A stretch of DNA of 64,000 nucleotides, taken from Pecten maximus (taxonomy: Eukaryota). Made by a program: the position numbers and the translations under genes. This document shows positions 12,392-64,000 of this stretch, piece by piece; positions within the stretch are counted from its first letter, which is position 1, and each line of letters begins with the position of its first letter. The stretch is from NCBI RefSeq assembly GCF_902652985.1, contig NC_047017.1, positions 21,576,001-21,640,000 of the forward strand. The letters are read 5' to 3'. The notes under the pieces are model-generated. The model was not told where the DNA came from. It ran no database searches and saw only the letters and a list, made by a program, of their open reading frames with translations.

Positions 12392-12499
12392 GACGAACGT
12401 TATCACCTAACAGGGCGACAAAATACAGTAAATCGGAGTCAATCAGTAGCGGAATACCACCTAGATTTTAACAAATCATCGTCCACGACGCTGCCACCA

Positions 12500-15626: not shown

Positions 15627-17815
15627 AGATTCAGATTCAGATTCAGATTATTTTATTTCCTTGTGTTACAAGACGCATTGGAGAGTAGACATATACATAT
15701 ACAATAATACAATAGTATAGAATAGTGATGGACAATCATATCATTATATCAATCAAGAATATATATATCTTGATATAGAAGAACACATTACATGGTATAT
15801 CATTAAAAAATAGCACAATGCATTACATTTACTTAAATTCATATTAAATGATAATCACAGTGTTTATGCACTGATATTTAAACATTCATTACGTTGACCA
15901 CAAAATTTTCAGGATTTTTTAAAAGAAAATCTTCATACAAATCCTCGATATAAGCCCCAGGATAAAATCTATATGAACGCTGACATATTTATTAAGTATA
16001 GATAATATTCATATACATTTATCATAAATGCATAATAAAGTAATATAGTATACAATATGTTTCATTGATAATACAAGCATGATATACTAGTACTATAGAA
16101 ACGGTAAATAGTGCCAATCCTTACTTTAATTACATACATATACGATTTTACATATTAGCTTTATAAGGACCACTGATTTGTAAACAGGAAGTGCACTGAT
16201 ATATACCTTTTATCCTGTAATTATACAATCTCAACCATTCGACATGTCTTTTAAACTGATATAAAATTTAAATGAAAGTACAGCTCTGAAATGTTTGTAT
16301 CAACCTATATTGAGGCAAAATTATGTATAATTATTTCGGCGCTTAAAACACAAAGATACATATTTGCCTAACTTATTTAATTCTCCAATATTCCGGGTAT
16401 TTAATAGAAGGATCAACTTAAAAACACTGGGACGTCTGTAATAATATGACTTAATGTACTTTTGCCTTAAATCAGTATAACAGTTGCACCTTAGAAGAAA
16501 ATGAAATTCATCCTCAATATCATTAGAATTACATACTTCACATATCCTATGATCTCTAGGACGGTTTCTATACCGTCCTTGTTCAATATTTAAATTGTGT
16601 GAACTAAGTCTAATACGTGCTATATTCTTTTGGTAAGAACTACTAATAGGTTTAGTTAAATAAAATTGTAGTGTAAAATTATCGATAAGATGTCGGTATA
16701 GAAAACCCTTTGGAATTGCTTGTATGTTTGATAAAAGTTCTAGACGATAAACGTCGTAAAATCTATTTTCAATAATTTTATAAGCTTTCCTATCATTGCA
16801 TGTTATATTGTTCCAAAGATAAGATAATCCTAATTTATCTAATTCTGCTCTTATGTTTAAAATCCAACTGTCATTTGATCCTATCCTTTCCTCATAGCAA
16901 TTTCTTAATATACAATTATATGAATGTTGACAATGGTAATCTTCCGAGTTCACAATATACTAAATTATTACATGTACTTTTTTTCACACCAAGTACTTTT
17001 TTACAAAAATTAATATGTATCTTTTCAATATCTAAGGCTTTGTGGAAACCCCATACCTCGGCACTGTAACTAAGTATGCTATTTACATATGTGTCAAACA
17101 CAGAACATTGGGTATTAATGTTAAAATCATGATTTTTGAACTTATTATATATAGCGTAATATGCTTTATTGCCCTGTTCAGCCACAGGCTTTTGGTTAAC
17201 ATAAAATTTACCATTATAATTGAAAAGCATCCCTAGATAATTGAATTGGTCTACAATTTGTAGTTCAGTTTCATTGTAAAACCACTTTTCGTTATTTTTA
17301 ATATTCCCGCCGTTTCTAAAGACCATTATTTTCGTCTTGTCTGTGTTCAAAATAAGACTATATTTATTGTTATAAGATTTGAGAGCATCTATGACCTGTT
17401 GCAAATTCTCTGGAGAGTCAGCAAATAACACCGTATCATCAGCATACATAAGAAGAAAAATACTGATTAAGTTAAGTTCAATTGATGGACAACATTCACT
17501 AATAAAATGCATTTCACAGTCATTTACAAATAATGAGTACAAAATCGGGGAGAGGATTTCTCCTTGGAAGAGACCGATTGTGTTGGAGAAGAAATCAGAG
17601 TAATAACCGTTATGTTTCACACAAGATTTAACTGAATTATATAATGATTGAATGACTCGTAACATTTTCCCCCTCACACCCTGTCTTATTAGTTTACTCC
17701 ATAATTGAGACCTTTCAATAAGATCAAATGCTTTCTTGTAATCGACAAAGCAGCAGTATAACATTCCGCCCTTTTTATTTAAATACTTGTTAATAAGTGT
17801 TTGGGGTACAAATAT
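15627..17815 (-). mobile_element. 5'-truncated LINE (RTE-X-like), frameshifted RT ORF
   Basis: ORFs 16916-17821 (FVDYKKAFD, GLFQGEILSP, YADD, YLG) and 16321-16953 (CEVC..EDEFHFLLRC); 3' tail AATAAAATAA(TCTGAA)n at 15627-15660. Confidence 0.88.
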
Positions 17816-18969
17816 TACCATTATATTATCTTTATACTACCATATACCATGATCGATTGAACTTCTTTGTATACATTTATTGAAATGGATGCGTTACCCG
17901 ACACACATGGACTTGACACAAATGATTCCCAGTTTACTGTCCATTCGGACGCTTTACAGGATCAGGATAGAATTGGACCGTGATGATTACGAATTTGTTT
18001 TGATTGTAAATGGGCATATTTAAAGCATTATTAATTAATTATGAATAAATCCAAAATCAGGCATCATTCTGGAGCGGGAATAAGGAAGTTTTACCCGTTT
18101 TTTGTTGTTGAAAATTTCAGTTATATTTTCTGAATCTTAATGTCACTTTAATTCACAGCCATGATAATCTCTCATGCATGTTATTCCTGACTCAGAACTA
18201 TTCCTGCAAATTAAGCCTATGGTGACCCCTCCCCCGCTTGTGCGCTATAAGTTTTTCATAACTGATACGTGTAGAATGATGTTAATCTGCTCAAATGCAT
18301 GGACAAAACAGATTAACCAAACTTGAGTAGAAATTGAAATATAAGAATATATTTGTACTAGTGTCGTGTCATTTCACACGGTACTTGTTGTCTATTCCAT
18401 GGACATCCGGTGATGTTTCTAGAATCTAGTATTGTCATATATTTATATCTCTCCCTTCTTCAGCTTGGTAAACTCTGACTGCGTTGAAATAATGTAAAGC
18501 AGTAAAAACAACAGGCTCAGCGGATTAATAAGCGCAGGAATCGGTAACATAATCATGACGTCGTCTCTTTGTGACGTTACCGGAACGTCAACTAGACGGT
18601 GCCATTTTCAAAGGACTGATCTACGACATTTTAGCGTTTTCTCCTGTTATCCGATGACCTCTGCACAAAAATCTAATGTCGAGTGAGTGTTTTGTCGAAA
18701 GCTAAACTGAAGATTGCAGAAATAAGTGGATGTTTAACTTCTCCACGAGGTAAGCTTACAACAAATGGCTGAAGAGTACAGTTCCTATAGAACAATCGAC
18801 CACGTCACTACTAACTCTGTGTCAATACCCGCTGTGATTGAAAACCATGGTTAGTGCGAGACGGAAATTGTGGATTGTGAATATATTAATGATTTGAAAA
18901 CGTAAAATATATCAAACAGAAATGTTGAGTTTTTTTTATAATTTTGTTACAATACTTGTGTCTTTACGC

Positions 18970-20174: not shown

Positions 20175-20419
20175 TCATTCCAACCGGAAGTAGATATCTT
20201 TGGTGAGCATATGGTAAATGCACGCCACTGACTTCGATTGATGCCATTCCGGCTTCTTTGGGAAGTGAGTTTTCATATTCATTGCCATTTCGTTGTTGAC
20301 TTCCGTCAACACCTGAAGGAGGTCTGTCCGGAAATCGTAACTTTGGAACCGGTGCACCAAATTATACATACAATATGGCAGCCATCCTCCAGTGTGATCA
20401 TCGGAAAAGGTCACCCGCC
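20175..20419 (-). CDS. Gene 1 exon 6 (small subunit)
   Basis: GGWLPY..LTEVN..CIYHMLTKDIYF. Confidence 0.9.
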
Positions 20420-23400
20420 CTGAAAAATAATAGTAACGAAATATATAGATTATATGCATCATACCGCAAAATGATTTCTCTAGATAACCCAATCTACGTA
20501 AAATGTCCTACTTTCAATAGTGAGGTCCGAAGGAATAAACAAAGAAAAATATGTAGAAAACTGAAATAAAGTTTAGGCCTATTTTAATACAGCTGGACAC
20601 TTTTTATGATCTGCTTACTGGATTAACAAGTAAAACCTCAAATAAACAAATCATAATAATAAACAATATATTATATTTATACATAAAAATAAATAAATGA
20701 ATATAAACCATGATCAATCTGAAATAGCTTTGTGTCGATTGCATTTCATCGTGTAGAAATTCGCAAACTTTTGACTTAAATATTTCAACAAATCTGCATT
20801 TCAATGCACGGATATAATCTCACTTTGCTTGAAAAAATAACAGGCACAACATGTACCAACAGTATTAGCTATATCTATCTGTATATCGTAACAACGAAAC
20901 TCTCCCAATCCTCTTGTAATCTTGTTATCGGTGTTAGTCGTTCCATGGGAAGTAACTCCCGGTCAATGGGAAGTAACTCCCGGTCAATGGGAAGTATCTC
21001 CCGGTCAATGGGAAGTAACTCCCGGTCAATGGGAAGTAACTCCCGGTCAATGGGAAGTATCTCCCGGTCAATGGGAAGTATCTCCCGGTCAATGGGAAGT
21101 AACTCCCGGTCAATGGAAAGTAACTCCCGGTCAATGGGAAGTATCTCCCGGTCAATGGGAAGTATCTCCCGGTCAGTGGGAAGTAACTCCCTGTCAATGG
21201 GAAGTAACTCCCGGTCAATGGGAAGTAACTCCCGGTCAATGGGAAATAACTCCCTGTCAATGGGAAATAACTCCCGGTCAATGGGAAGTAACTCCCGGTC
21301 AATGGGAAGTAACTCCCGGTCAATGGGAAGTAACTCCCGGTCAATGGTAAGTAACTCCCGTTCAATGGTAAGTAACTCCCGGTCAATGGTAAGTAACTCC
21401 CGGTCAATGGGAAGTAACTCCCGGTCAATGGGAAGTATCTCCCGGTCAAACTTTACAACACTCTCTTGTCAATTTTCTAATGATGAATGGTGATATGGAT
21501 TAGCGTTATATATAGATACACGAGGCCGAGAAGCCGAAAGCTGAATGGGGTCACGTGATTGCGATAGACGAGTCCGTGCAGCGTGGTGATGTACGCATTC
21601 TTGTAAGACCTAAACCACCGAACTGTAATTTTATTGTTTTGCATTGATTTAGGTTTTTACAAAACATCGTGGTCCTTTTACAATATCTATATATATATAT
21701 ACTTGGATACCAATAATATATTACTACTTACCTGGATCAACGTGGCCCGGCCCTAAACGAAAGTACGTTGATTGCTACGTACCTCGAGCCGAAGAGAACA
21801 TCGTCTTTGCCTTTATACAAAACGCTTGCTTATCCTAGACTTTACACAAACACCTATCGCTACTTACCTGGATCCCAAAAGAACGGCATCCTGTCTCCCA
21901 CACAAATCAATCGCTACTTACCTGGATCCCAAGAGAACGGCATCCTGGCTCTCACACAAATCAATCGCTACTTACCTGGATCCCAAGAGAACGGCATCCT
22001 GGCTCTCACACAAATCAATCGCTACTTACCTGGATCCCAAGAGAACGGCATCCTGGCTCTCACACAAATCAATCGCTACTTACCTGGATCCCAAGAGAAC
22101 GTCATCCAGACTCTCACACAAATCAATCGCTACTTACCTGAATCCCAAGAGAACGTCATCCTGGCTCTCACACAAATCAATCGCTACTTACCTGAATCCC
22201 AAGAGAACGGCATCCTGACCCTTATACAAAATCAATCGCTTCTTACCTGGAGCGGAAGAGAACATAACAAGACAATGGCTGTAGCAGGGAATGGAACAAA
22301 AGTCAGCATCCTCCATCTCCCGCTTCGGTTGAAGTTCTAAGATTCTCTCCCTTCTTTTCTGTTCCTGGTCCTTCTGTACCTTCTCCCGGTATCGACACCA
22401 CGCCTCTCGGTTTCGCCTTTGTTCCTCCTCGTTTGCGTACGTTTGGTCCTCCTCGCCGTCTATAAAAGGTATATACCCTGGTCCATACATCCTGGCGGGG
22501 TTGTCATCACTCCTGCCCTTCGCGTCAGCTGTCGTGGTAGTTTTAGAATCATCTCCGTCCGTCACTCCATGATCCTTTCCTGTGATTTGAAGGTCTACTC
22601 CCTGTCCAACCATCTCCTGCGTTGTTAACTGATTTCCGTGATGCCCTTCTTCCTTTTCCAAACCATCCCCGTGTGTGTTCGCGCAGTCGTGAGTACCGTT
22701 CCGTCCCTGATGCTGTGACACATGACGACTCTCTTCCCTCAGACCAGCCAGGGGAGGCTGAGAATTATATGTTATGATGTCGACATCGACCCCTGGATCC
22801 ACCAGTTCGGCGTCGTCAACATCCATTCGTCCCCGACACGCCTGGAATGTACACGAACAATTAGACCGTGTTGCCAACGACGCAATAAACAATCACAACA
22901 CTGCACCCAGGACAAACATGTACAAAATCACATTTTCGAAACCCAGGGGTCATGTTTTCGTTATACCCAGAATTCGCACGTGACCGTTATATTCTCCAGC
23001 ATGATAATAATATGTAGCGTCCCGTATACGTCTACAGTGACCAAGGACATCCCATCCCGTGACTCGATACGCCATGTTCTGTTTTCACGTGTATTTGTTT
23101 TAGGGGTTTAACGTCTTCGCAATAGCTCGGGTCATATGGGTTATCTAAAGAGGAAAGCAAGATGGACGGATCAGTGAGGAAATAGTGCTGAAATGGAGGC
23201 AGAAAATCTATTGTGTTCACCTTTTCTTCGCCTGATGATGAATGTTGACATGTTTGTATAGGAAGCTGAGCATTTAAATTGTTTTCTAGGAATGTACATA
23301 ATGTGTAATAGACTTTTGAATTTGATAAGTTTATACCAGTTAAGTATTTACTTGTATTAAGATGAGGGTAGGAACATTTATTTATTTGTATTAAGATGAG

Positions 23401-26400
23401 GCCAGGAACATGTATTTACTTGTATTAAGATGAGGATGGGAACGTTTATTTACTTGTATTAAGATGAGGGTGGGAACATTTATTTACTTGTATTAAGATG
23501 AGGGTAGGAACGTTTATTTACTTGTATTAAGATGAGGCCAGGGACATTTATTTACTTGTATTAAGATGAGGGTAGGAACGTTTATTTACTTGTATTAAGA
23601 TGAGGCCAGGGACATTTATTTACTTGTATTAAGATGAGGGTAGGAATATTTATTTACTTGTATTAAGATGGGGATAGGAATATTTATTTACTTGTATTAA
23701 GATGAGGCCAGGAACATTTATTTACTTGTATTAAGATGAGGCCAGGAACATTTATTTACTTGTATTAAGATGAGGCCAGGAACATTTATTTACTTGTATT
23801 AAGATGAGGGTGGGAACGTTTATTTACTTGTATTAAGATAAGGGCCAGGAACATTTATTTACTTGTATTAAGATGAGGCCAGGGACATTTATTTACTTGT
23901 ATTAAGATGAGGGTAGGAATATTTATTTACTTGTATTAAGATGAGGCCAGGGACATTTATTCGCTTGTATTAAGATGAGGGTAGGAATATTTATTTACTT
24001 GTATTAAGATGAGGCCAGGAACATTTATTTAATTGTATTAAGATGAGGGTGGGAACGTTTATTTACTTGTATAAAGAAAAGTTTCGGCTTCCCTCTCATG
24101 GCAGCGCATTCGTTGTCGTTGAATGTACTTATGATGTCGTCAGTCGGTATCGAGCCGTCGAATGTGTGAAGCACGTGTTGTCGAAGATTTTTGGAGTCCT
24201 GAACTGGACATTCACTGCCGTGAGTACTGATTAGGCATGCGAAACAGTCGCTGTCCTCCTCAAGCTTTGATTGAATTTCTAAATAAAAATATTACGTGTT
24301 ACAAAATTTTGAAGAAAATCATTTTAGTGGTATTTTGTTCGATAACTGTTAACGCTAAATAGAGCATATAGAGGGATACTTAGAACCATGGCACTTACCT
24401 GATATAAGGCCCAAAATTTGTCACATTTCCGTATAAAATTGAACTACTATCATTTGTGATACATACCTATCAAAGAGTCCTTAAGATCTTGGGTAGTCTT
24501 GTTTTCCAGCACTTTGATTTGAAAACTGAGAACTTCGAATAATGATGTCAGGTAACCAATATCTTTTTCGGCATGAGGTAGATTCTTTTTAGCATTACGA
24601 AACTCTGTATTTACAATGAGTACGGCAACCCCACGCTGGGAATGGTTAAAATCATATCTATCATCGGGCTGGTCATCGCCATGCTTCGGACATTCATCAA
24701 CAGGTGGCACTTCTGGCTTTTTCTTTGGTTTCGGTTCATTTCCATGTGTTTTCCTATAAAAGAAATATTTCGTTTATTACATATTAACAAACCTATCATT
24801 TTTGTACAGTTAATATGTATTGAGGCCGAATGATGATTGTGGCATTACTATATATAAAATGACGTTTATGCTGAAATGAACGTAATTCAGTTAAATTCCA
24901 CAGTGACTTACCGCTTTACTAGCTTCTTCTCCTTATTAAGATTGCCTCTGAACCCATCTACTGAAGACTCTGATATAGACGAGAAAACAGTTAATAATCA
25001 TCTCAGTTTATGGATATGTACTTTTTAAGTGTGTCATCTTATTCGCAATAAAATGGGTTCATCGGGTTATCACAATCTTTCCACAGAAACTTTTTTTTAA
25101 AAAATCACAAATCCCGTCATATTTTACTGTCCTCATTTTAAATTCCAAAGAGCTGTGTGACGATCGCATGTCTTATATACATGTATCTATATATATAGGA
25201 CCATTTAAGGACGTGCCTAGAATTGGAGGTGGAGGAAATCCGGAGTACCCGGCGACACCTTAAGCACTCGGCCACCGCGGCCCCGACATTGATCATATGT
25301 AGAACACCTAGCCCTGTTTATGTATTGTTTATATGATATTCTACCGCGTTTGCTATGCAACGCCATTTTTGATTGGTTTAGAACCGTGTATTATTTGCCA
25401 GTAAAACACTCTCGTGGCAATAATACACGCTCGTGAGTCACGGCTGTTACAATTCCCCCTCTAAAATCGTGCATTTGTATGAACGTCGGAGACCCCATAT
25501 TTTACAACGGAGAACTTTGCCAGATTGTTAATTTCTATCAACCCAGAACAGACTTTGCTAAACAATATGTTGTAAGCTCTATTTCCACAGGCAACCTTTG
25601 GAGAGCATTTCTACATGAATTGCTGGCCGACATCCCGAAATTTCTCGTTACATGCCGTCAACTGGCTTAGGATTGACGTCAGCTTTTGAATATTCATTAG
25701 CACGCACGCCTTATCGTTTCTTGTGAATTGTAACAGCCATGTAGCGACCCGGTGATTCTTTGTCGTTTTTCTATTAGGAAGATGTAGATCTCAGAACTAA
25801 ACAGTACATGGTAGAATAGAAATAATCAACATTGACTCGTGTATAGTTGCAGGATATACAACTCGGACTCGGATATTTTGAAATCTTAATTAATAACTCA
25901 GGCCTGCGGCCTTCGTTATTAATTTTATTGCAAAATATCCTCGTACTCGTTGTATATCCTGCAACAATACACGAATCATCGTTAATTATTTCTTAAGTTT
26001 TTCCATATTTAGTTGGCAAAAGTTGCATTTTAGTCTTTATTAGGATTTATTATGGTAAGTTATGGACTCTATAACCATATAAAAAAAAAATACAAATATC
26101 AAATTAAATTACTTCGGTGAAATGTGGATTATTATTATAATTTATAGGCTATTTACATTGTATAATTAGTAAATATTTGAATGAATTTCCATGAATAGGT
26201 ACACTAGGTCAGTGAGTTTCGCTGGGTGTAAAAATGTACGGTAGCTTTGAGGCGCCATATTTGAACTATTCTGCGTAGTCTTGTAGTGTTGAAATGGGCT
26301 AACACGTGTTTGCAATACTGTTTTATTTGAATAGTACTTAGTAATATGTGTGTATATATTAACAGGTGCTATATGTAATGTTGCTACTACATTATTAACG

Positions 26401-29400
26401 AATATAAGTTATTAGTATGAATGGTAAGTGAGGAATTTTCAAATGTTTTGTCGTATGCATTTTGAAGCATTCCATGATTGAGTAACATTGACCCTCGTAA
26501 CAATCAAGGCCCTGCAAAAGTCCACGGCTTCCGCAACAGGACCGGCAACAGGACCGGTTATGGACCAAGTTCAGCCACATGAAGTTTGTCGGTAACCACG
26601 GGCAGGTCATGGTATCCAAAGGCCTAGCGGTCAGCGCTACTATATATATATACTGTATAATATACTGCAGACATTCTAGTTGGATGATCTCTGGTTAAGT
26701 ATAGTTAGAAATCTTTACTGGTAACATTATGTATACTTAATCTGCGAGTTGGTATATAGTGAGGAGGACTTTGTGTCAGACATCCTACACGGCACGCGCG
26801 CGGGATATAGCGAGGGAGATGTTCGTGAGGAGAACTTATACTTTGAGCAGTGAAGTACCCTGCTGAACTGCGGAACTTTATGTGCTTGTTAGAGGTTGTG
26901 AGAGTGAACGTGATTGTGCTTTTGTGTATTAGTGTTATTGTTTCAGTCTCAAATCTCCTATGTTACAAGCTGAATTTTTAAAAAAAAATGGAATTTCTTA
27001 ATATACAGAACAGAATACATAACAGTAACAAGTGTCGTGTACCCCTGATGATTATACAATGTGTCGTTTACCCCTGACGATTATACAATGTGTCGTGTAC
27101 CCCTGATGATTATACAATGCGTCGTGTACCCCTGACGATTATACAATGTGTCGTGTACCCTTGACGATTATACAATGTGTCGTGTACCCTTGACGATTAT
27201 ACAATCATGAATGTGTCGTGTACCCCTGACGACTACACAATGTGTCGTGTACCCCTGACAATGATACAGTGTGTCGTGTACCCCTGACAATAATACAGTG
27301 TGCCGTGTACCCCTGACGACTATACAGTGTGCCGTGTACCCCTGACGACTATACAGTATGTCGTGTACCGCTGACAATGATACAATGTGTCGTGTACCCC
27401 TGACAATAATAGATACAGTGTGTCGTGTACCCCTGACAATGATACAGTGTGTCGTGTACCCCTGACGACTATACAGTGTGTCGTGTACCCCTGACGACTA
27501 TACAATGTGTCGTGTACCCCTGACAATGATACAGTGTGTCGTGTACCCCTGACAATGATACAGTGTGCCGTGTACCCCTGACGACTATACAGTGTGTCGT
27601 GTACCCCTGACGACTATACAGTATGTCGTGTACCGCTGACAATGATACAATGTGTCGTGTACCCCTGACAATAATAGATACAGTGTGTCGTGTACCCCTG
27701 ACAATGATACAGTGTGCCGTGTACCCCTGACGACTATACAGTGTGTCGTGTACCCCTGACGACTATACAATATGTCGTGTACCCCTGACAATGATACAGT
27801 GTGTCGTGTACCCCTGACAATGATACAGTGTGCCGTGTACCCTTTACGACTATACAGTGTGCCGTGTACCCCTGACGACTATACAATGTGTCGTGTACCC
27901 CTGACAATAATAGATACAGTTTGTCGTGTACCCCTGACAATGATACAGTTTGTCGTGTACCCCTGACAATGATACAGTGTGCCGTGTACCCCTGACGACT
28001 ATACAGTGTGTCGTGTACCCCTCACAATGATACAATGTGTCGTGTACCTATGACAATGATACAGTGTGTCGTGTACCCTTTACGACTATACAATGTGTCT
28101 TGTACCCCTGACAATGATACAATGTGTCGTGTACCCCTGACAATAATACAATGTGTCGTGTACCCCTGACAATAATAGATACAGTGTGTCGTGTACCCCT
28201 GACAATGATACAGTGTGCCGTGTACCCCTGACGACTATACAGTGTGTCGTGTACCCCTGACGACTATACAATGTGTCGTGTACCCCTGACAATGATACAG
28301 TGTGTCGTGTACCCCTGACAATGATACAGTGTGCCGTGTACCCCTGACGACTATACAGTGTGTCGTGTACCCCTGACGACTATACAGTATGTCGTGTACC
28401 GCTGACAATGATACAATGTGTCGTGTACCCCTGACAATGATACAGTGTGTCGTGTACCCCTGACAATGATACAGTGTGCCGTGTACCCCTGACGACTATA
28501 CAGTGTGTCGTGTACCCCTGACGACTATACAATGTGTCGTGTACCCCTGACAATGATACAGTGTGTCGTGTACCCCTGACAATGATACAGTGTGCCGTGT
28601 ACCCTTTACGACTATACAGTGTGCCGTGTACCCCTGACGACTATACAATGTGTCGTGTACCCCTGACAATAATAGATACAGTTTGTCGTGTACCCCTGAC
28701 AATGATACAGTGTGTCGTGTACCCCTGACAATGATACAGTGTGCCGTGTACCCCTGACGACTATACAGTGTGTCGTGTACCCCTCACAATGATACAATGT
28801 GTCGTGTACCTATGACAATGATACAGTGTGTCGTGTACCCTTTACGACTATACAATGTGTCTTGTACCCCTGACAATGATACAATGTGTCGTGTACCCCT
28901 GACAATAATACAATGTGTCGTGTACCCCTGACAATAATAGATACAGTGTGTCGTGTACCCCTGACAATGATACAGTGTGCCGTGTACCCCTGACGACTAT
29001 ACAGTGTGTCGTGTACCCCTGACAATGATACAGTGTGTCGTGTACCCCTGACAATGATACAGTGTGCCGTGTACCCCTGACGACTATACAATGTGTCGTG
29101 TACCCCTGACAATGATACAGTGTGTCGTGTACCCCTGACAATGATACAGTGTGTCGTGTACCCCTGACAATAATACAGTGTGCCGTGTACCCCTGACGAC
29201 TATACAGTGTGCCGTGTACCCCTGACGACTATACAGTATGTCGTGTACCGCTGACAATGATACAATGTGTCGTGTACCCCTGACAATAATAGATACAGTG
29301 TGTCGTGTACCCCTGACAATGATACAGTGTGCCGTGTACCCCTGACGACTATACAGTGTGTCGTGTACCCCTGACGACTATACAATATGTCGTGTACCCT

Positions 29401-31493
29401 TGACAATGATACAGTGTGTCGTGTACCCCTGACAATGATACAGTGTGCCGTGTACCCCTGACGACTATACAGTGTGTCGTGTACCCCTGACGACTATACA
29501 ATATGTCGTGTACCCCTGATAATGATACAGTGTGTCGTGTACCCCTGACAATGATACAGTGTGCCGTGTACCCCTGACGACTATACAATGTGTCGTGTAC
29601 CCCTGACAATAATAGATACAGTTTGTCGTGTACCCCTGACAATGATACAGTTTGTCGTGTACCCCTGACAATGATACAGTGTGCCGTGTACCCCTGACGA
29701 CTATACAGTGTGTCGTGTACCCCTCACAATGATACAATGTGTCGTGTACCTATGACAATGATACAGTGTGTCGTGTACCCTTTACGACTATACAATGTGT
29801 CTTGTACCCCTGACAATGATACAATGTGTCGTGTACCCCTGACAATGATACAATGTGTCGTGTACCCCTGACAATAATAGATACAGTGTGTCGTGTACCC
29901 CTGACAATGATACAGTGTGCCGTGTACCCCTGACGACTATACAGTGTGTCGTGTACCCCTGACAATGATACAGTGTGTCGTGTACCCCTGACAATGATAC
30001 AGTGTGCCGTGTACCCCTGACGACTATACAATGTGTCGTGTACCCCTGACAATGATACAGTGTGTCGTGTACCCCTGACAATAATACAGTGTGCCGTGTA
30101 CCCCTGACGACTATACAGTGTGCCGTGTACCCCTGACGACTATACAGTATGTCGTGTACCGCTGACAATGATACAATGTGTCGTGTACCCCTGACAATAA
30201 TAGATACAGTGTGTCGTGTACCCCTGACAATAATACAGTGTGCCGTGTACCCCTGACGACTATACAGTGTGTCGTGTACCCCTGACGACTATACAATATG
30301 TCGTGTACCCCTGACAATGATACAGTGTGTCGTGTACCCCTGACAATGATACAGTGTGCCGTGTACCCCTGACGACTATACAGTGTGTCGTGTACCCCTG
30401 ACGACTATACAATATGTCGTGTACCCCTGACAATGATACAATGTGTCGTGTACCCCTGACAATGATATAGTGTGTCGTGTACCCCTGACAATGATATAGT
30501 TTGTCGTGTACCCCTGACAATGATATAGTGTGTCGTGTACCCCTGACAATGATACAATGTGTCGTGTACCCCTGACGACTATACAGTGTGTCGTGTACCC
30601 CTGACGACTATACAGTGTGTCGTGTACCCCTGACAATGATACAGTGTGTCGTGTACCCCTGACAATGATACAGTGTGTCGTGTACCCCTGACAATGATAC
30701 AATGTGTCGTGTACCCCTGACAATGATACAATGTGTCGTGTACCCCTGACAATGATACAGTGTGTCGTGTACCCCTGACAATGATACAGTGTGTCGTGTA
30801 CCCCTGACAATGATACAATGTGTCGTGTACCCCTGACAATGATACAGTGTGTCGTGTACCCCTGACAATGATACAGTGTGTCGTGTACCCCTGACGACTA
30901 TACAATGTGTCCGTGTACCTATGACGGGTATCCTTACCGGCTATACGGGATATAATGTTTGACATATTTTTAGATATGCTTTTATTTACTTCGTGTATTT
31001 TTTTCAAAGCAGATACAGATGATAATATGTTAGTCTTCAGGATATGTAAGAAATTAGTATACTGACCCTAAACATTTATATAGAACAACTTACCTATCCA
31101 TATAATACACACATAAGCACTTTGTTTTTCGCAAGGCGATAATCGCATAACATTTGCAGGATCTCTGTTTCCCCCCAAATATCATTTGTTGATGTACGGA
31201 GCATGTAAAGCCATCCTACCCAATCCTAACATTTACAAGCACATGAATGTTTACGTTTTAAATATTGCTTAAGTCTGAGATTTCTTGTTGGGGCTGATCG
31301 GTGTTTCGTTTAGTTTAAACATATCTTATTGACATAATGTTGACATACACTGTACCAACTTAGAAATAACTTCTCCCGTATTCATACATAATGATATGTA
31401 AATAATGGTCACGTGATGGCATATACAAATATTCTAAAGTATGGTAAGGAAAAGAAAAAAAAATTGGCTCATCAGAGCAAAAATATTACTTAT

Positions 31494-31581
<88 letters not shown>

Positions 31582-32461
31582 CATTGGGATGGCAAGAATT
31601 TAATGCATTATGTTCATTTTTAAGTATTCTAATATTTGAAATTATAAAAACGGTTAAAACGGGGGAGGGATGTAGTTGAACTCTTCAGTAGTTCCGCTCT
31701 CCAGCCGACAAATAGGTTCCATTAAATAGTCAAATCACAGGCGTCTTAATCTGGTTAGTATTTTTACAAAAGATATTCGCCCCTATACTACTATATCAAT
31801 AAGGTATAAGACTTGAAATGTGAGGATGAGCTTCGATTAATTTTTAATATAAGTAAATCCGGCTAAAATATCAAATGCACACAAATTTCAGTTACGTACA
31901 TTGGTTTTGAATCCTTAAATATCAACGTATGTTATTAATTTGTCGTGTGACAATGAATTAAAAATGGTAAATGAACGAATAGTGGTCATGATAGCCGACG
32001 ATGCATCGACAGTAAAACGGAAGTAAGATACATTAGTATTTTTTCTACAAATACTAATCCGATGCAGACGCCTATGACCAGATAATTTAATGTTGCCCGG
32101 ATGTAGTTAAACCGATGTCATTTATATACTGGTCGATTTCTGATATGAGTTTGACCAACATTAATGAAATGTTCTACAATAAATGATAATATACAACTAA
32201 CAATTCTTAACATATCGTTCTTTACTGTAGTTTGTGTTATTTTTTGTTAGATGGCGTGACAGTCGGTTATCAACAGGTCAGTATTTATCTTCCGACATAC
32301 TGTAGTCTATTCTTTCTTTACTCACCTGGAATGTCCGGCGCCAGCACACCCGCCCCTACAGCTGCCCCCTCCGTCACTGGCCCGGGGGTGGGGACGTTTG
32401 TACTAGAGGGGGGAGATGCATCCGTCGAGAGAGGCAGCTCACCCTCGGCCATACCTTCCAT
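20175..32461 (-). CDS. Caspase-3/6/7-like gene 1 (6 exons, 510 aa, intact ORF, non-canonical S1 pocket)
   Basis: join of 32461-32326, 24969-24912, 24753-24467, 24278-24067, 22841-22247, 20419-20175 = 1533 nt, all GT-AG and phase-consistent; motifs YDFNH..RGVAVLIVN, ISTHG, GKPKLFFIQACRG, MLTKDIYF. Confidence 0.9.
20945..21448. repeat. 21-bp minisatellite (~24 copies) in gene 1 intron 5
   Basis: Unit atgggaagtaactcccggtca. Confidence 0.95.
21855..22246. repeat. 54-bp minisatellite made of the exon5/intron5 junction (~7 copies)
   Basis: Each unit contains minus-strand GTTCTCTTGGGATYCAG|GTAAGTAG. Confidence 0.92.
22247..22841 (-). CDS. Gene 1 exon 5 (catalytic Cys ACRG, long linker, start of small subunit)
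   Basis: Within ORF 22188-22892; acceptor TTCCAG|GCG, donor CCAG|GTAAG. Confidence 0.92.
23345..24066. repeat. 34-bp minisatellite made of the exon4/intron4 junction (~21 copies)
   Basis: Each unit contains minus-strand ATACAA|GTAAATAAA. Confidence 0.93.
24067..24278 (-). CDS. Gene 1 exon 4 (catalytic His, ISTHG..GKPKLFFIQ)
   Basis: 212-nt exon translated by hand; same length in genes 2 and 4. Confidence 0.92.
24467..24753 (-). CDS. Gene 1 exon 3 (start of large subunit)
   Basis: YDFNHSQRGVAVLIVNTEF..AEKD. Confidence 0.9.
24912..24969 (-). CDS. Gene 1 exon 2 (SSVDGFRGNLNKEKKLVKR)
   Basis: 58-nt phase 1/2 exon; donor GCG|GTAAG; paralog at 41276-41336. Confidence 0.75.
25203..25284 (-). mobile_element. 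Internally deleted copy of the 2558-2780 SINE family
   Basis: 5' head GGGGCCGCGGTGGCCGAG joined directly to the CCGGGTACTCCG core. Confidence 0.65.
25330..25996. mobile_element. Non-autonomous element with long terminal fold-back (Crypton-like architecture)
   Basis: ~80-bp-arm hairpin 25824-25990 centred on ggcctgcggcc, plus short IR attctacc/ggtagaat; family assignment is inference. Confidence 0.5.
27031..30920. repeat. 29-bp satellite array (~3.9 kb) in gene 1 intron 1
   Basis: Unit tgtgtcgtgtacccctgac(aatg|gact)atacar with 33-bp variants. Confidence 0.97.
31494..31575. repeat. (AG)n microsatellite
   Basis: About 41 AG units. Confidence 0.97.
32326..32461 (-). CDS. Gene 1 exon 1 (MEGMAEGELPLSTDASPP...PDIP)
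   Basis: ATG; homologous to 42783-42924 and 55164-55299; donor CCAG|GTGAG. Confidence 0.75.
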
Positions 32462-32653
32462 GTTTGATTATGATTATTTCGTCAGGACAGAGACCTATAT
32501 ACTAAAGTTCTCTGGTCAGGAGTTATAATTATCACATCATCGAATGGAAATGATTTTTGTCGGCTTGACCTCACGTGGACACGAGTCATATCTAAATACA
32601 GTATTAGCGATTATAATGAGCGATAGTCTAATCTCTGTAGTGGGATACAGGTA

Positions 32654-32663
32654 GGGAAATCCC
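32654..32663. promoter_or_regulatory. Candidate NF-kB (Rel) site upstream of gene 1
   Basis: GGGAAATCCC matches GGGRNWYYCC ~190 bp 5' of the ATG; the aligned position in gene 2 (43131-43140) reads TGGAATTTCC on the minus strand. Confidence 0.4.
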
Positions 32664-33554
32664 AACATATGACTATTTTGTTGAAAGTTTGACCTCTGTT
32701 GCAGTTATCTCCCTTTTACACGTGTATCTCGGTGATTAACATTTGATTACTATTTAAAGGATGGTTTGTATTGATTGTGAATTGTTCCGGATTAAACATT
32801 GATTGACAAGAAAGATAACTTATCATGTGAATGATTCCGTGTATAAAGATAATAATTGATTTAGAACAAAATATGTGTCACACGAGTATTTTATCTTCTT
32901 GTCATTGCTATTATGCAAGCAACAAACAATGTTTCACAGCATAGTTCGATCAAAATGACCTGTTGTGTTGAACTTTGATTAGCATATTGATTACAAACGA
33001 GTCTATAGTCATATAGGGGAAATAAGTCCTTTGTATATATACATTATATATGTTAGTTGTTTATAATGTAACAAACCTTATTATCATCAGCTGCATCATT
33101 TGTATTTATACTGGTCTAGATTTAGCAACAAATCATGTGAGCATTTGATTACATAGTTACTTAAATATATGTAAATCATGCATCAGAAATAAATAAATGA
33201 TACAATCCCTGTGTTGTCAATATAAAATTTAACAAAAACGAATGGTCCATAACAGCATCCTGCTGGACAGTATTCCGAATCGATATGATTTGTATTGTCC
33301 CGACGAATCAATGAAAGGTTAGCACACCTTACAAAAATGGAACTGCCCACTTTGAATATTCCACGAAAAGGTCAGCGCGACAGGTCATTCTAGTTCGACT
33401 ATAACACCATGTTTATTGGTACAATAAGACACAAACAGAGACAGTAACCTAAAATGAAAAGAACAATACCTGACAATATATGGACACGTGTAAACGATGC
33501 CCTTGATAAAACTAATTTTAAGATACGAAAAGCATAAGATATTTACTTAGGTAC

Positions 33555-33700
33555 ATTTTATAGTGCTATCTCACTGGAGTATACTACCAAAGACACCCAA
33601 TGGGACATCAAGCTCGGCAATAGTGTACTGCCAACGGGCGAACTAATCGTCCTACTCCCATTATGTGGAATACCAAGCAAAAGTAGCAACTAATATATTT
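33555..33700 (-). mobile_element. Decayed SINE fragment with Meta-type core
   Basis: ATAGTGCTATCTCACTGGA..GACACCC motif; related plus-strand fragment (CAGTGGGATGGCACTATAAA) at ~44190-44395. Confidence 0.45.
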
Positions 33701-36700
33701 ATAGAATATCATAAATACTGTACATATTGCCAGTTAGAACTTTTGTCTGTTAGGTAGTCAGCCCTAGAGAAAGTCACAAGAAAGGTGGCGGATGTATTAG
33801 ATCAAGCTATGATGTTTCTCGAATTATCAAGGCAGAGAAGAGGCTTCATATTGGTCATTTATACCCTTATACAACTAGACAATAAGGCTATCTCCAGCTC
33901 TTATTTATCAACATTAAAATTCAGTTAACATCAGTTTTGTCGATATATCTATCTATCATTAATGCTATCATTTAATTTGCTGTTGATAATAATATAACGT
34001 GTTTAAGATAATACATGGTACACATGTAATGTCACTACGGACATGTTTGAGGAGAAATCAACTATATGGACTGTGGCCACGTATGAAATCTGTACCGGTC
34101 CTGATCGATGATACAGCTTTTTGTTGTTTTTTTTGTTTTGTTTTGTTTTTCTCTTTTTATTGATATTCGCTTTTACTTTTGAAATCTCTTACCTACTTCA
34201 TTCGATGGAAAACACACACACACTGAAGGGGAACAACTCTGACTAAATTATGTGTCTTGGCCCTGCTGGTAGACTATAAGTCCCCGATGTTTACCGTTAC
34301 CCTGCATATCACGTTTTATTCCTTATGAATAGTGGCCATTTCCGTACATCCGTATTTCATGTTGTTGTTTTTATCTATGCTTAAACATACTTTTATATAT
34401 TTATTTTTATATCACTTGATTAAATATCAAGGTGTTAATACCTCCTTTGCCTTTATATAACCCTGAATGATTTCTGGTCGCTTATAGTACCTAGCAGCAA
34501 ACACACTATTCTGATTTATCAAAAACTTCTGTTATAGCATATACTACACCAAACATACAATCGCTAAATCCGGGCCGATTACTTAAAGTCTCTCATTCCT
34601 GACGGAATTGGCCGAGACGATGCGATTCCACCCGATATGTGTCAAAATACTTCTATTATAGCACACTACATAATATTATACTGCACCTAAGATACAACCT
34701 CTATATCTCGGCAAATTCCGTAAAGTCTCGGATTCCGTACGGAATTGGCCGAGACGATGCGATTCCACTCGATTGATCGTCAGATTGGGATTGATGTTAT
34801 TCAGATAAAGGTTGTACAACATAAAACGCAAGGAAAAATCAACGTTTGTTTCATTGTTTTAATGTAAGAATTTTAAAGTGCTGCATCAGTTGCAATTACA
34901 TCAAGAAAATAAATCTCCATTGTCAACATATTACTACGTAAAAGGTGAAATAAACTGACATTGTTATCATCACAGAGTGATTAACATTGAGACCAAACAC
35001 CGACAGATTAACATTGAGACAAACACCGACAGATTAGCATTGAGACAAACAACAGATTACCGCTGAGACAAATATCAACAAGTAAAACTGAATTGAACAC
35101 CAACGGAAAAAAAACATTCTTTTAATAAATGGTTAAAATTAACATCATCATCGACTGATTAACATCGAGACAAACACCGGCGGACCAGCATTTACATTTA
35201 TACCGACTGATATCTTCAAAACATCTGCATTGGTATTAAAAATAAATTAAATCACTTTTGTAAAATATTATTAATAAAAAATGTCTAAACGTACAACAAA
35301 ATAAAAAAGAATAATAAAATAAATGGGAATACATCTGTAACAAGAAAAATCATCCGTACTTAACTTTAACGTCTACTCACACACATTACATAATAAAGTT
35401 TATTAGTTCTCACGTACTCGTTACCCTGTATTATATAGCCAGCTACATATTAGTACAAGTATTAAACAAGGTTACCCTAGGCATTATAAAGCTGCCGTAT
35501 TCCATGAGACCAGTCGTTGTTATTATAATACATATACAAACTGTTTAGGGGGTAATTAAGGAGAGATCTATCTCGGTCACCGGTAAAAAAAAAAAACTTA
35601 CTTTGAAACCGTCAATTGCCACAATTGAAACAAGAACAAAAACTCCATTAATATTCATTACAAAATAGTTATTACCTAAACAGAAACGTTTTAATCGTAA
35701 AACGTTGATTTAACAAAAAGGCAAAAAATTAATTAGCGAAAGTTGTTAAAATGTCGGATGAGTAGCTCATACATAATTATGGTGTGTATGAAGTGTATAG
35801 GATGAATATATAGCAAAATTTGAGAAAATGAGATTATCGACCACGGGAAATAAATTAGGATGAGAAAATGAGATTATCGACCACGGGAAGTAAGTCAGGT
35901 TGAGAAAATGAAATTTTCGACCATTTCAGAGTTAACAATAATTACTCTACTTATTGAATGGACTGATCGACTGAGCTTGCTTGATTACTTTCTGATGTAA
36001 ACAAGAAATTGACTACAGCTAAACACTTTCGACGATAAAATTGCACTCACATAGTTCCTGCCACCACCCCCGCGAAAAAAAAACTGGAGACAATATCTCA
36101 CTCTAAAAAGGAAGTGCGAGTATCAATCATCTACGTAGTGTTGCTATGCCGCGTCATATCCAACGATGACGTCATCAAATTAGTTCCATCCATGAGAATA
36201 CATTTGTACAAATATGGCTACTAGTGTCGTGTAATTTCACACAGTACTTGTTGTTGTCCATGTAGTGAACATCTGGGGATGTTACGAGTATACTGACCAA
36301 TTCCTTGTTTACTTCGTTTAAAGCCAGTTGTACTTTACTCACGATTCAAGGTTACCACGAGTTTAAACTTGGCTGATGTGTCTGCATCCCAATTCCTATT
36401 GTACACGAGACGCGTGCACTAAATTATCAAGGGAGATACATCTATATTGTAATTGCCGCCTTCGTTGTAGCTTTGCGTTATCGTGATTTTTTCTTTCGGG
36501 TGACTTCGTTGATGTACGATCTGTAAGTCCTCAGTGGTTCGACCCCAGGTGTGGTGTGTGTACATCAACTGTACCACGACTGTACCTCGACAGTACTTTG
36601 TATCCCGGCAGAATTCAGTACCACGACACTGCACCACGAAAGCGTTCCAAGACGGTAGTTTGTATCCCTGCATTACTCGTTTTGAACACCAATAATAAAA

Positions 36701-36701
36701 T

Positions 36702-36979
36702 TCATACTGCCGTAACTAAAGCCGCTTTCTTGCTCCATTTTAACCGGAAGTAGATATCTTTGGTGAGCATGTGGTAAATACACGCTGCTGACTTCGATTG
36801 ATGCCATTCCGGCTTGCTAGGCATGTTAGTTTGCAGATATATTGCCATTTCGTTGTTGACTTCTGTCAACACCTGTAGGAGGTCTGTCCGGAAGTCGTAC
36901 CTGTGGAACCAGTGCACCACATTATACATACAATATGGCAGCCATCCTCCAGTGTGATCATCGCCCCAAGCCAACCGCT
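36702..36979 (-). CDS. Gene 2 exon 6 (small subunit, ends VTAV)
   Basis: ORF 36702-37031. Confidence 0.9.
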
Positions 36980-62497: not shown

Positions 62498-62531
<34 letters not shown>

Positions 62532-63973
62532 CTGGGAGATTTTAGATCCTATTTGAATATCAAATTCACACCGTAACGTACACATTGGATTAGATTTCTT
62601 ATATTTGAAGGTTTTAAAATGGACTAAAAGCGACCGTGATAGCCGACGAAGCATCGACTGAAGTAGGCTATATCTTTTAGAGCGGTTTTGCAACGGGCAA
62701 TCTAATTGGTCGACAGCTCTTTAAACAATCTGATTGGTTGACAGCTCTGTAAAAAAATACTACATATGATTGTCGACCAATCAGACTATCCGTTTCGAAA
62801 CGGCTCTAAGATAGTGAGTATACATCTGTTCCACAGTCGATGCATCGTCCGGCCTTCAAGTTTTACACCTTGTTGATATAGTAGGAGAAGAGGCTGACAT
62901 ACTTCGACGTTACACGAAATGCACGGACTATGTCCAGTACACCAGATCATGGATATGAAGTATGCCACATGTCACGTGGCCTGGCTGTTCAGATTGTTAC
63001 CTTGACCTTTCTGAACTAATGACTTTTATACTTTACCTGGGGCAGATGAGAACATGACGAGACAGTGCGGATAGCAGGGGATTGTACAAAAGTCCACGTC
63101 ATCAGACTGGCGCGGGCGAGGAGGGTAATATGACGCACGTGAATTATCAGCTGTAGAAAAGTCAGGGTCATCGCTGTCGTCGGTTTCGTCAGCGAAAGGA
63201 ATTTCATCCAAATTGACTTTCTCTCGAACAGACTGAGAGAGGTCTTGTGATGAGGAGTTCAGATCGTCCTGGTCGGTCTTCAAGTTATCTATCGCAGTGT
63301 TCCCTGTCCCCTCCAATCGCACAGGATTATCTCTGACGTCACCATGATGACCAGGCGGCTGACATACGGCCTCCGTAGTAATGACCCCCCTGTCTATCGA
63401 GTCGGCGTCCGCTGACCGGTGAACGGTCCGGCATGCCTGTAAAAACCAAACAGTTAATCTTGGATTTAGCCCTAATTCAGTCCAATGCTTTCGTTATTGA
63501 ACAATTCCTCATCACGAATCGAGCCAATGAAAAACTGTCTCTAAATTCCAATGAATGTTATTCCACAAGAGAATATGGAAGGGTCAAAATATTTGGAGGC
63601 CAGAACCACATTGGTTTCTTTTGTTGAAACTGCATGTTCAATGCACAACAATACCAAATCGTCATAAAACCCATTACAAATGAAACAGTATACAACAACA
63701 TACAACTTGAAGTATTAATTGCTCTCGTCCAGTTCACCTCTATGACAACTTTAAAAATCACCTGTATGAAGAAGAGTTTGGGTTTCCCACTCAGACATCG
63801 ACATTGGTTCTCTGTAAAAGGTCTGATGATACTATCGGTAGGTATCCAACGGTCGTAGGTGAAGGTCGTGTGTTGTCGCTTCCGTTTATCGTCGGATATC
63901 CTCGTTTCCAGACCGTGTGAGCTGATCAGGCACAGGAAGCAGTCACAGTCCGAGGTCAAAGACGAACGTATTT
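60760..63973 (-). CDS. Caspase-like gene 4, 3' part (exons 4-6; 5' exons outside window)
   Basis: Exons 63973-63762, 63436-63037, 61049-60760; ISSHG, GKPKLFFIQACRT, ends VQVSAV; no lesion in the visible part. Confidence 0.9.
61200..61905. mobile_element. Non-autonomous element with terminal fold-back (Crypton-like architecture) in gene 4 intron 5
   Basis: IR ttttctctcatccc/gggaatgagagaaaa plus ~40-bp-arm hairpin 61815-61905 centred on cggcggagcc. Confidence 0.5.
61903..63133. repeat. Exact 597-bp tandem duplication (61903-62499 = 62537-63133) joined by G32
   Basis: Includes the last 97 nt of gene 4 exon 5 and its donor. Confidence 0.9.
63037..63436 (-). CDS. Gene 4 exon 5 (ACRT plus linker)
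   Basis: ACRTVHRSADADSIDRGV..IPCYPHCLVMFSSAP. Confidence 0.9.
63762..63973 (-). CDS. Gene 4 exon 4 (catalytic His)
   Basis: ORF 63558-63959; 212 nt. Confidence 0.9.
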
Positions 63974-64000
63974 CTGTGTAAAAAAAAACCCCAATTAAAG

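Follow-up and report, generated by a model that had tools for sequence, protein, structure and literature searches.

What defines caspases is their specificity for aspartate, for which Arg341 (caspase-1 numbering, used here unless stated otherwise) is treated as indispensable; the question raised by the locus described here is how a caspase that has kept its catalytic dyad, but has lost this arginine, would recognise its substrate. The locus occupies a window of 64,000 nucleotides (nt) from the scallop Pecten maximus (assembly GCF_902652985.1, contig NC_047017.1, positions 21,576,001 to 21,640,000), in which a six-frame motif scan, together with stop-to-stop segments, has revealed four tandem caspase genes on the minus strand, here called g1 to g4. 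The genes belong to two subtypes, type A (g1 and g2) and type B (g3 and g4), arranged in the order A-A-B-B. Our reading, to which we assign a probability of about 0.55, is that they form a tandem array of lineage-specific effector-type caspase genes encoding working proteases, with an acid-directed P1 preference and re-tooled subsites.

The catalytic histidine lies in the motif I-S-T-H-G in the type-A genes and I-S-S-H-G in the type-B genes, while the motif of the catalytic cysteine is QACRG in g1 and g2, QACRS in g3 and QACRT in g4; a GGWL motif and a KDIYF tail are also found in all four genes, the stop codon of g1 being located at 20175 and the histidine exon of g4 starting at 63973. The catalytic His, the oxyanion Gly and the sequence Q-A-C-R are kept throughout: the codon for the Gln closes the exon upstream (F-F-I-Q, followed after the junction by A-C-R), and the Gln that seems to precede A-C-R in the raw frame is the CAG acceptor of the intron, which leaves the spliced protein unchanged.

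Loop L3, read from the DNA across the splice junctions, begins with P-G-R-V-T-F-S-D-D in g1, P-E-R-L-A-W-G-D-D in g2, S-G-R-Y-A-F-S-N-D in g3 and P-E-R-F-A-W-S-N-D in g4, and aligns without gaps with caspase-7, caspase-3 and DrICE (phmmer against Protein Data Bank (PDB) chains; HMMER and MAFFT alignments). In this alignment, the position of caspase-3 Arg207 (caspase-1 Arg341) is occupied by Ser, Gly, Ser and Ser in g1 to g4, respectively, and the position of caspase-3 Ser213 (caspase-1 Ser347) by Gly in all four. In loop L1, caspase-3 Arg64 (caspase-1 Arg179) corresponds to Leu in g1 and to Arg in g2, g3 and g4, and the Gly located two residues further on gives way to His, Arg or Tyr. The insertion that follows the H-G pair is 11 residues long according to HMMER. 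An initial annotation, made by eye from the DNA, had reported the His and Cys motifs in four paralogs, the exchanges of Arg207 and Ser213, the loss of Arg64 from g1, the replacement of the neighbouring Gly and an insertion of about 12 residues; the scan and the alignments return the same residues, and its L3 strings are identical to the spliced junctions.

The fold that carries these residues is that of an effector caspase. The Pfam profile PF00656 (Peptidase_C14) is covered in full (positions 1-233) and above its gathering score (E 1e-33 to 1e-41, 115-132 bits) by the database proteins P0039 (g1), P0001 (g2) and P0124 (g4), on which the whole-protein work was done, and single exons, which were used for the searches, match it individually (E 1e-10 to 2e-3); a search of eight full-length members, the RefSeq products among them, gave no CARD, DED or other Pfam domain at E<=0.1. 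In the AlphaFold2 model, the g4 product reaches predicted local distance difference test (pLDDT) values of 84-98 through p20 and p10, with a disordered prodomain and linker, and the insertion after His-Gly is predicted with high confidence to be a longer β hairpin; Foldseek places caspase-7 and caspase-3 at the top, with template modelling (TM) scores of 0.89-0.93 normalised to the target. Caspase-7, caspase-3 and DrICE (PDB 3sir, 4fdl, 1f1j and 1cp3) are the best matches of the array proteins in both sequence and fold, in agreement with the expanded, effector-caspase-derived family without CARD or DED that the initial annotation had proposed. They have in common with the wider clade described below the dyad, the oxyanion Gly, Gln283, Arg179, Trp340 and Trp348, and with the array proteins the C-terminal motif around M-L-T-K-D-x-Y-F. 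The scallop proteins differ from them in that Arg341 is replaced by Ser or Gly, Asn342 by Asp or retained as Asn, Ser347 by Gly, and the Gly and Thr of L1 by other residues, in the hairpin after His-Gly, which is 11 residues longer, and in the linker, which is 5-10 times longer.

Relatives of the array genes have been retrieved by a full HMMER scan with the p10 exon of g1 and by word-indexed searches, and occur in scallops (Ylistrum, Mizuhopecten, Argopecten), oysters (Crassostrea/Magallana, Saccostrea), four Mytilus species and Pinctada, with a fragment in Solemya; those found on Logan contigs of 1.6-1.9 kb that hold the full coding sequence must be spliced transcripts. We have compared 32 non-redundant sequences that lack Arg341 (Arg-less) with 22 canonical caspases. 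His237, Gly238, Gln283, Cys285 and Trp348 are present in every sequence of both sets, and Arg286 in 32/32 Arg-less and 20/22 canonical sequences. Position 341, an Arg in all 22 canonical caspases, is never Arg in the Arg-less set (Ser in 26, Cys in 3, and Gly, Thr and Phe in 1 each); the next position, mostly Asn in canonical caspases (19/22), is Asp in 24, Glu in 5 and Asn in 3. Position 347 is invariably Gly (canonical, mostly Ser, 21/22) and position 349 invariably Leu (canonical, mostly Phe, 20/22). In loop L1, Arg179 is kept in 27/32 sequences (canonical, 22/22), its loss being shared by g1 and one oyster subgroup; the residue two positions after it, Gly in all canonical caspases, is mostly bulky, and the third residue after it, Thr or Ser in all canonical caspases, is Ala in 27/32.

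The array genes thus differ from a canonical Asp-specific caspase in the S1 triad Arg179/Gln283/Arg341, of which Gln283 is kept. The clade retains His237, Gly238, Gln283, Cys285 and Arg286, together with Trp340 and Trp348 as the aromatic walls of the groove, and the loops that form S1 and S3 have changed together: in L3, from S-W-R-N to A-W-S-D/E and from G-S-W-F to G-G-W-L, and in L1, from R-x-G-T to R-P-x-A. The products would, we propose, be made as zymogens with a linker of 105-180 residues and would act as working proteases in which Arg179 and Gln283 alone bind P1; this binding would be weaker and still directed to acidic residues (Asp, perhaps Glu), as the retention of Arg179 (27/32) and Gln283 (32/32) suggests that P1 is still anionic. 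The preference at P3/P4 would be shifted off acidic residues, with DEVD-type substrates being disfavoured, because Arg341 is gone and position 342 carries Asp or Glu. The invariant catalytic machinery and groove tryptophans, the coordinated changes of the two loops, the occurrence of the clade across bivalve orders and a ratio of non-synonymous to synonymous divergence (dN/dS) that indicates purifying selection (0.35 for g1/g2 and 0.31 for g3/g4) argue for a working protease and not for a decoy.

Several points weigh against this proposal. The loss of Arg341 may abolish ordinary activity, by analogy with mouse caspase-12, whose Arg341Lys substitution has been taken as predicting a non-functional caspase (PMC11121540); as assembled, g2 and g3 are frameshifted and g1 lacks both S1 arginines, so part of the array may be decaying; and the published biochemical assays that were compared, those of Cg3B and CgCASP3/6/7-like6, could not be linked with any Arg-less sequence.

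The same residues could be read in a second way, which, judging from the sequences, we regard as unlikely: an ancient bivalve clade with intact catalysis and rebuilt S1 and S3 might have given up Asp at P1 altogether and might cleave after a neutral or basic residue, or after Glu or phospho-Ser. Coordinated and conserved changes, i.e. the absence of Arg341 from all 32 sequences with an acidic residue next to it, the uniform exchange of Ser347 for Gly and the replacement of the Gly and Thr of L1, resemble re-tooling and not decay, and Arg179 has also been lost in g1 and in one oyster subgroup; however, the retention of Arg179 in 27 sequences and of Gln283 in all 32 is hard to explain without an anionic P1. 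The site equivalent to the IETD processing site of caspase-3 bears on both sides of the matter: it carries Glu or lacks an acidic residue in some members, which would fit a new specificity, but the type-A scallop members and several mussel members keep its Asp. If P1 were indeed other than Asp, the clade would represent the first case of a non-Asp S1 among metazoan caspase lineages, and bivalve cell death or immunity would possess a parallel, non-canonical proteolytic arm that is invisible to standard DEVD-type reagents.

No residue stands out as a dedicated replacement for Arg341: in the 32 Arg-less sequences, no column was found that is at least 85% Lys or Arg and yet rarely so in canonical caspases. 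When the threshold is lowered to 65%, two columns emerge, one of them being position 337, the Arg of the G-R or E-R pair that the initial annotation had singled out; this position is Arg or Lys in 22/32 sequences and Thr or Met in 10/32 (Thr in oysters, Met in two others). We have rejected it as a specific compensation, since it is also basic in relatives that have Arg341 and is Thr or Met in those ten sequences, and we have likewise rejected the R/K-x-x-His that closes the hairpin insertion and is common to the Arg-retaining relatives. The His that follows the His-Gly insertion (approximately residue 181 of the g4 product) is present in 31/32 Arg-less sequences and in 8/10 Arg-retaining mollusc relatives; in canonical caspases, the same column is Gly (E-E-G-I-I-F-G), and the site adjoins the catalytic His at the end of the extended hairpin.

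It could also be that the proteins cleave inefficiently and act on canonical caspases or inhibitor of apoptosis proteins (IAPs) as partners in dimerisation, as decoys or as scaffolds, a reading that we consider improbable; a decoy or scaffold role was also one of the alternatives named in the initial annotation, beside non-Asp specificity. The linkers between the Cys motif and the first strand of p10 would agree with such a role, being poorly conserved as well as long (104-187 residues in scallop, Pinctada and most oyster members); none of the array genes has the short linker (<60 residues) of the executioner caspase-3/7 type. Regulated protein-protein docking is suggested by a conserved C-terminal S/T-x-V tail that resembles a class-I PDZ ligand and that occurs in most clade members, in the form of V-T-A-V, V-S-A-V or V-T-E-V in scallops, E-S-S-V in mussels and V-S-Y-V or V-S-Y-L in oysters, having been lost in g1. 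On the other hand, all 32 sequences have the His, the Cys, the oxyanion Gly, Gln283 and the tryptophans of the groove, the clade spans bivalve orders from scallops to Solemya, and dN/dS is about 0.3; known pseudo-caspases lose catalytic residues. The view that Arg341 is essential and that caspase-12 is inactive through R341K (PMC11121540) favours a regulator, and caspase-12 and cFLIP are indeed caspase folds with a compromised S1 or active site that have been proposed as regulators (PMC11121540); however, cFLIP lacks the catalytic Cys and caspase-12 is a CARD-bearing protein of the inflammatory type, whereas the scallop proteins are of the effector type, keep all catalytic residues and, contrary to what would be expected of a cFLIP-like protein, have an invariant dyad.

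The history of the clade has been examined with a maximum-likelihood tree that was built with the L3 motif masked. All Arg-less sequences fall within a mollusc clade with a starred support of 100, at the base of which an Aplysia 'caspase-3' is located. The Arg-less groups branch inside this clade in a polytomy that also contains two arginine-bearing groups of bivalves: A-Y-R, one of whose members is a P. maximus gene located on a different chromosome, and Y-G-R, in which the Arg is shifted by one position, to 342. A single Arg-less clade is not rejected (approximately unbiased test, p = 0.48), and the existence of long-linker relatives with Arg makes the Arg-less genes a subset of the long-linker group. 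The scallop A and B subtypes are each starred in the tree, and the branch of g1 is three times longer than that of g2. The whole P. maximus genome holds only these four copies and one distant locus. In Ylistrum and Mizuhopecten, A and B share a contig, and in Argopecten their accessions are consecutive; we regard A and B as two ancient subtypes, neighbours in other scallops too, each of which was duplicated once more in P. maximus.

Bivalve caspase and IAP repertoires are greatly expanded, and functional work on them rests nearly entirely on substrates and inhibitors of the DEVD type, by which Arg-less enzymes may go entirely unnoticed. A clade without Arg341, whose catalytic residues are under purifying selection, is a natural experiment on the evolution of caspase specificity. 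Its interest is tempered by the gene expansion that has already been published and by earlier, catalogue-level remarks on S1 variation in mussels.

The expansion of effector-like caspases in bivalves and gastropods, with long linkers, tandem duplication and QACRS-type motifs, has been described (PMC7836458, PMC11543851), including a long-linker caspase-3/6/7 cluster of molluscs with linkers of 63-286 residues (Wang et al. 2024, PMC11543851). The array genes resemble this cluster, which overlaps with two groups that Vogeler et al. 2021 (PMC7836458) recognised in bivalves, caspase-3/7 and 3/7-like, in being restricted to bivalves and gastropods, in tandem duplication, in a short prodomain without CARD or DED, in a linker within the range of 63-286 residues and in frequent QACRS-type pentapeptides; unlike here, the S1 residues are not discussed in PMC11543851 or PMC7836458. 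In mussels, Arg and Gln residues that bind P1 Asp have been noted to be mutated in expanded effector caspases, with an altered or broad specificity being suggested (PMC3037946, PMC10967218), and the CASP7 and CASP9 entries of M. coruscus (PMC10967218) are members of the Arg-less clade; these remarks are at the level of a catalogue, with no clade defined, no conservation or selection analysis and no assay. The undescribed branch envisaged in the initial annotation is, therefore, only partly so: the genes have annotated RefSeq models, the long-linker expansion has been published and S1 changes have been noted in mussels, but the Arg-less clade is not defined there. What was already known is the gene expansion and the catalogue-level S1 variation in mussels; what is added here is the extension of the Arg-less trait to a clade. 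No mention of the scallop loci of this array was found in the searchable literature.

Candidate links to characterised proteins have been followed individually. Purified CgCASP3/6/7-like6 cleaves DEVD-pNA (Wang et al. 2024, PMC11543851), and its numbered residues (V54, S201, N202, K220, T260, F339, M366 and A422) fit none of the approximately 180 sequences that we have retrieved. The oyster RefSeq 'caspase-1' (P0061), which is Arg-less, is not Cgcaspase-1/Cg3B: the latter is canonical, with E-R-N-G-T-D-Q-D, and has a different sequence (alignment in Additional file 2 of Vogeler et al., PMC7836458). The DEVD/DMQD-ase and PARP-cleavage data on that enzyme hence do not bear on the Arg-less clade. 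Mussel caspase-3/7-3 and -3/7-4 (331 and 295 residues; PMC3037946) have been rejected as members because their lengths and residue notes do not fit; caspase-3/7-4 has a substituted Arg341, but also lacks Trp348, and so lies outside the clade.

The condition of the four copies determines how far the above applies to P. maximus itself. The initial annotation had presented four paralogs with the dyad; the motifs are present in all of them, but the genes are not equally intact, as g2 and g3 carry 1-nt frameshifts as assembled. In g2, 1 extra nt near 40308-40330, in the prodomain exon, breaks the frame between the prodomain and p20, as judged against g1 and the Mizuhopecten and Ylistrum orthologues; just past the insertion, an internal Met serves as the start of its RefSeq model. 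In g3, 1 nt is missing near 50638-50650 from a short homopolymer that lies eight codons short of the end of the His exon; this exon is 211 nt long versus 212 in the other three genes, and the His and the Cys are thus out of frame. In g1, the six-exon open reading frame (ORF) of 1533 nt is intact; its prodomain has lost 40 codons in frame, and the last 12 residues are cut off by an early stop, past which what is left of the tail can still be read in frame. Lacking both arginines and the tail, g1 is the most derived copy. No defect was found in g4, which is the best candidate for a functional gene within the window.

These lesions raise the possibility, less probable than not in our judgement yet to be taken seriously, that decay is local, with g2 and g3 being pseudogenes, g1 degenerating and g4 being the sole working gene of the P. 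maximus array. The 1-nt insertion of g2 and the 1-nt deletion of g3, for which no protein model was seen, are in line with this, as are the R179L exchange, the 40-codon deletion and the premature stop of g1, its branch length of three times that of g2 and the minisatellites that have invaded its donor regions. Against it, each frameshifted gene has a single lesion despite a synonymous divergence (dS) of 0.16-0.37 between partner copies and a dN/dS near 0.3, the RefSeq model of g2 still yields a full caspase domain, and the lesion of g3, unlike that of g2, coincides with a short homopolymer, a type of sequence at which long-read assemblies make errors. With only one lesion per gene, g2 and g3 are either recent casualties or assembly errors. 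Uncollapsed haplotypes, considered as a source of the four copies, are countered by the A-A-B-B order and by the dS of the partner copies.

The dS values vary up to nine-fold among exons: between g1 and g2, dS is 0.05 in exon 5 (22247-22841 versus 38052-38646) and 0.43 in exon 4, and between g3 and g4, it is 0.08 in exon 4 (50617-50827 versus 63762-63973) and 0.56 in exon 5. The intron flanks are also about 95% identical, and this exon patchwork suggests gene conversion between tandem copies.

The positions of the features are given in Table 1. Each gene has six coding exons with intron phases 1, 2, 1, 0 and 1, the borders having been drawn from three sources, i.e. the DNA, tblastn with orthologue proteins and a phase-aware GT/AG search. 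Exon 1 contains the Met; exon 2 is short, with the motif G-F-x-x-x-x-x-x-K-K-L-x-K-R; exon 3 encodes the prodomain and the start of p20, including the Arg179 site; exon 4 carries the catalytic His; exon 5 encodes A-C-R-x, the entire linker and the start of p10; and exon 6 encodes loop L3 and the remainder of p10. Exon 1 of g4 was not found in the upstream sequence examined. A run of N in g3 is located 363 nt upstream of the exon-3 acceptor and adjoins a 32-bp minisatellite (52415-53244). The six g3 exons with homology to orthologue proteins are all located outside the gap, and no reading frame crosses it; only the length of this intron, the scaffold join and the linkage of exons 1-2 to exons 3-6 depend on it.

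Table 1. Positions of the four caspase genes and of associated features in the 64,000-nt window.
Feature	Position	Strand	Remark
g1, type A	20175-32461	minus	RefSeq LOC117322653, XP_033733480.1
g1 coding exons 1 to 6	32326-32461, 24912-24969, 24467-24753, 24067-24278, 22247-22841, 20175-20419	minus	stop included
g1 Arg179-position codon	24579-24581	minus	Leu
g1 Arg341-position codon	20403-20405	minus	Ser
g2, type A	36702-42924	minus	LOC117323554, XP_033734730.1
g2 coding exons 1 to 6	42783-42924, 41276-41336, 40123-40530, 39728-39939, 38052-38646, 36702-36979	minus	
g2 Arg179-position codon	40235-40237	minus	Arg
g2 Arg341-position codon	36963-36965	minus	Gly
g2 tail codons	36702-36713	minus	
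g3, type B	47560-55299	minus	protein model: none seen
g3 coding exons 1 to 6	55164-55299, 53543-53603, 51337-51677, 50617-50827, 48612-49005, 47560-47855	minus	
g3 Arg179-position codon	51449-51451	minus	Arg
g3 Arg341-position codon	47839-47841	minus	Ser
g3 tail codons	47560-47571	minus	
Assembly gap (N run)	52040-52180		g3 intron between exon 2 (53543-53603) and exon 3 (51337-51677)
g4, type B	60760-64000	minus	LOC117323556
g4 exons in window	63762-63973, 63037-63436, 60760-61049	minus	His; Cys and linker; p10 and stop
g4 exons 3 and 2	L006:1514-1884, L006:7913-7973		just past the window edge
g4 Arg179-position codon		minus	beyond the window
g4 Arg341-position codon	61033-61035	minus	Ser
g4 tail codons	60760-60771	minus	
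Duplicate of the 3' end of the g4 Cys/linker exon, with donor site	62395-62541	minus	in the following intron

The duplicated exon end in g4 belongs to a local tandem duplication of approximately 600 bp. RefSeq isoform X2 of g4 begins in a mini-exon of 24 codons (L006:1985-2056), 93 nt upstream of exon 3, and does not use the conserved distal exons as its start; the RefSeq model of g1 has a first exon of 4 codons followed by a tiny intron of about 35 nt; both N-termini look like annotation artefacts.

In g1, two minisatellites, at 23345-24077 (34 bp, 21.5 copies) and 21856-22263 (54 bp, 7.5 copies), begin exactly at the donors of exon 4 and exon 5, respectively; as their units include the donor sequence, the introns carry arrays of donor-like sites. 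The long intron between exons 1 and 2 of g1 contains a satellite of 29 bp in about 132 copies (27032-30919, approximately 3.9 kb), which is open in several frames and gives rise to spurious long ORFs. Downstream of the caspase array, in the regions 8368-12406 and 16324-17836, two ORFs on the minus strand, 841 and 516 residues long, resemble gag-pol and integrase of a long terminal repeat (LTR) retrotransposon, and ORFs of 306 and 212 residues resemble a non-LTR reverse transcriptase.

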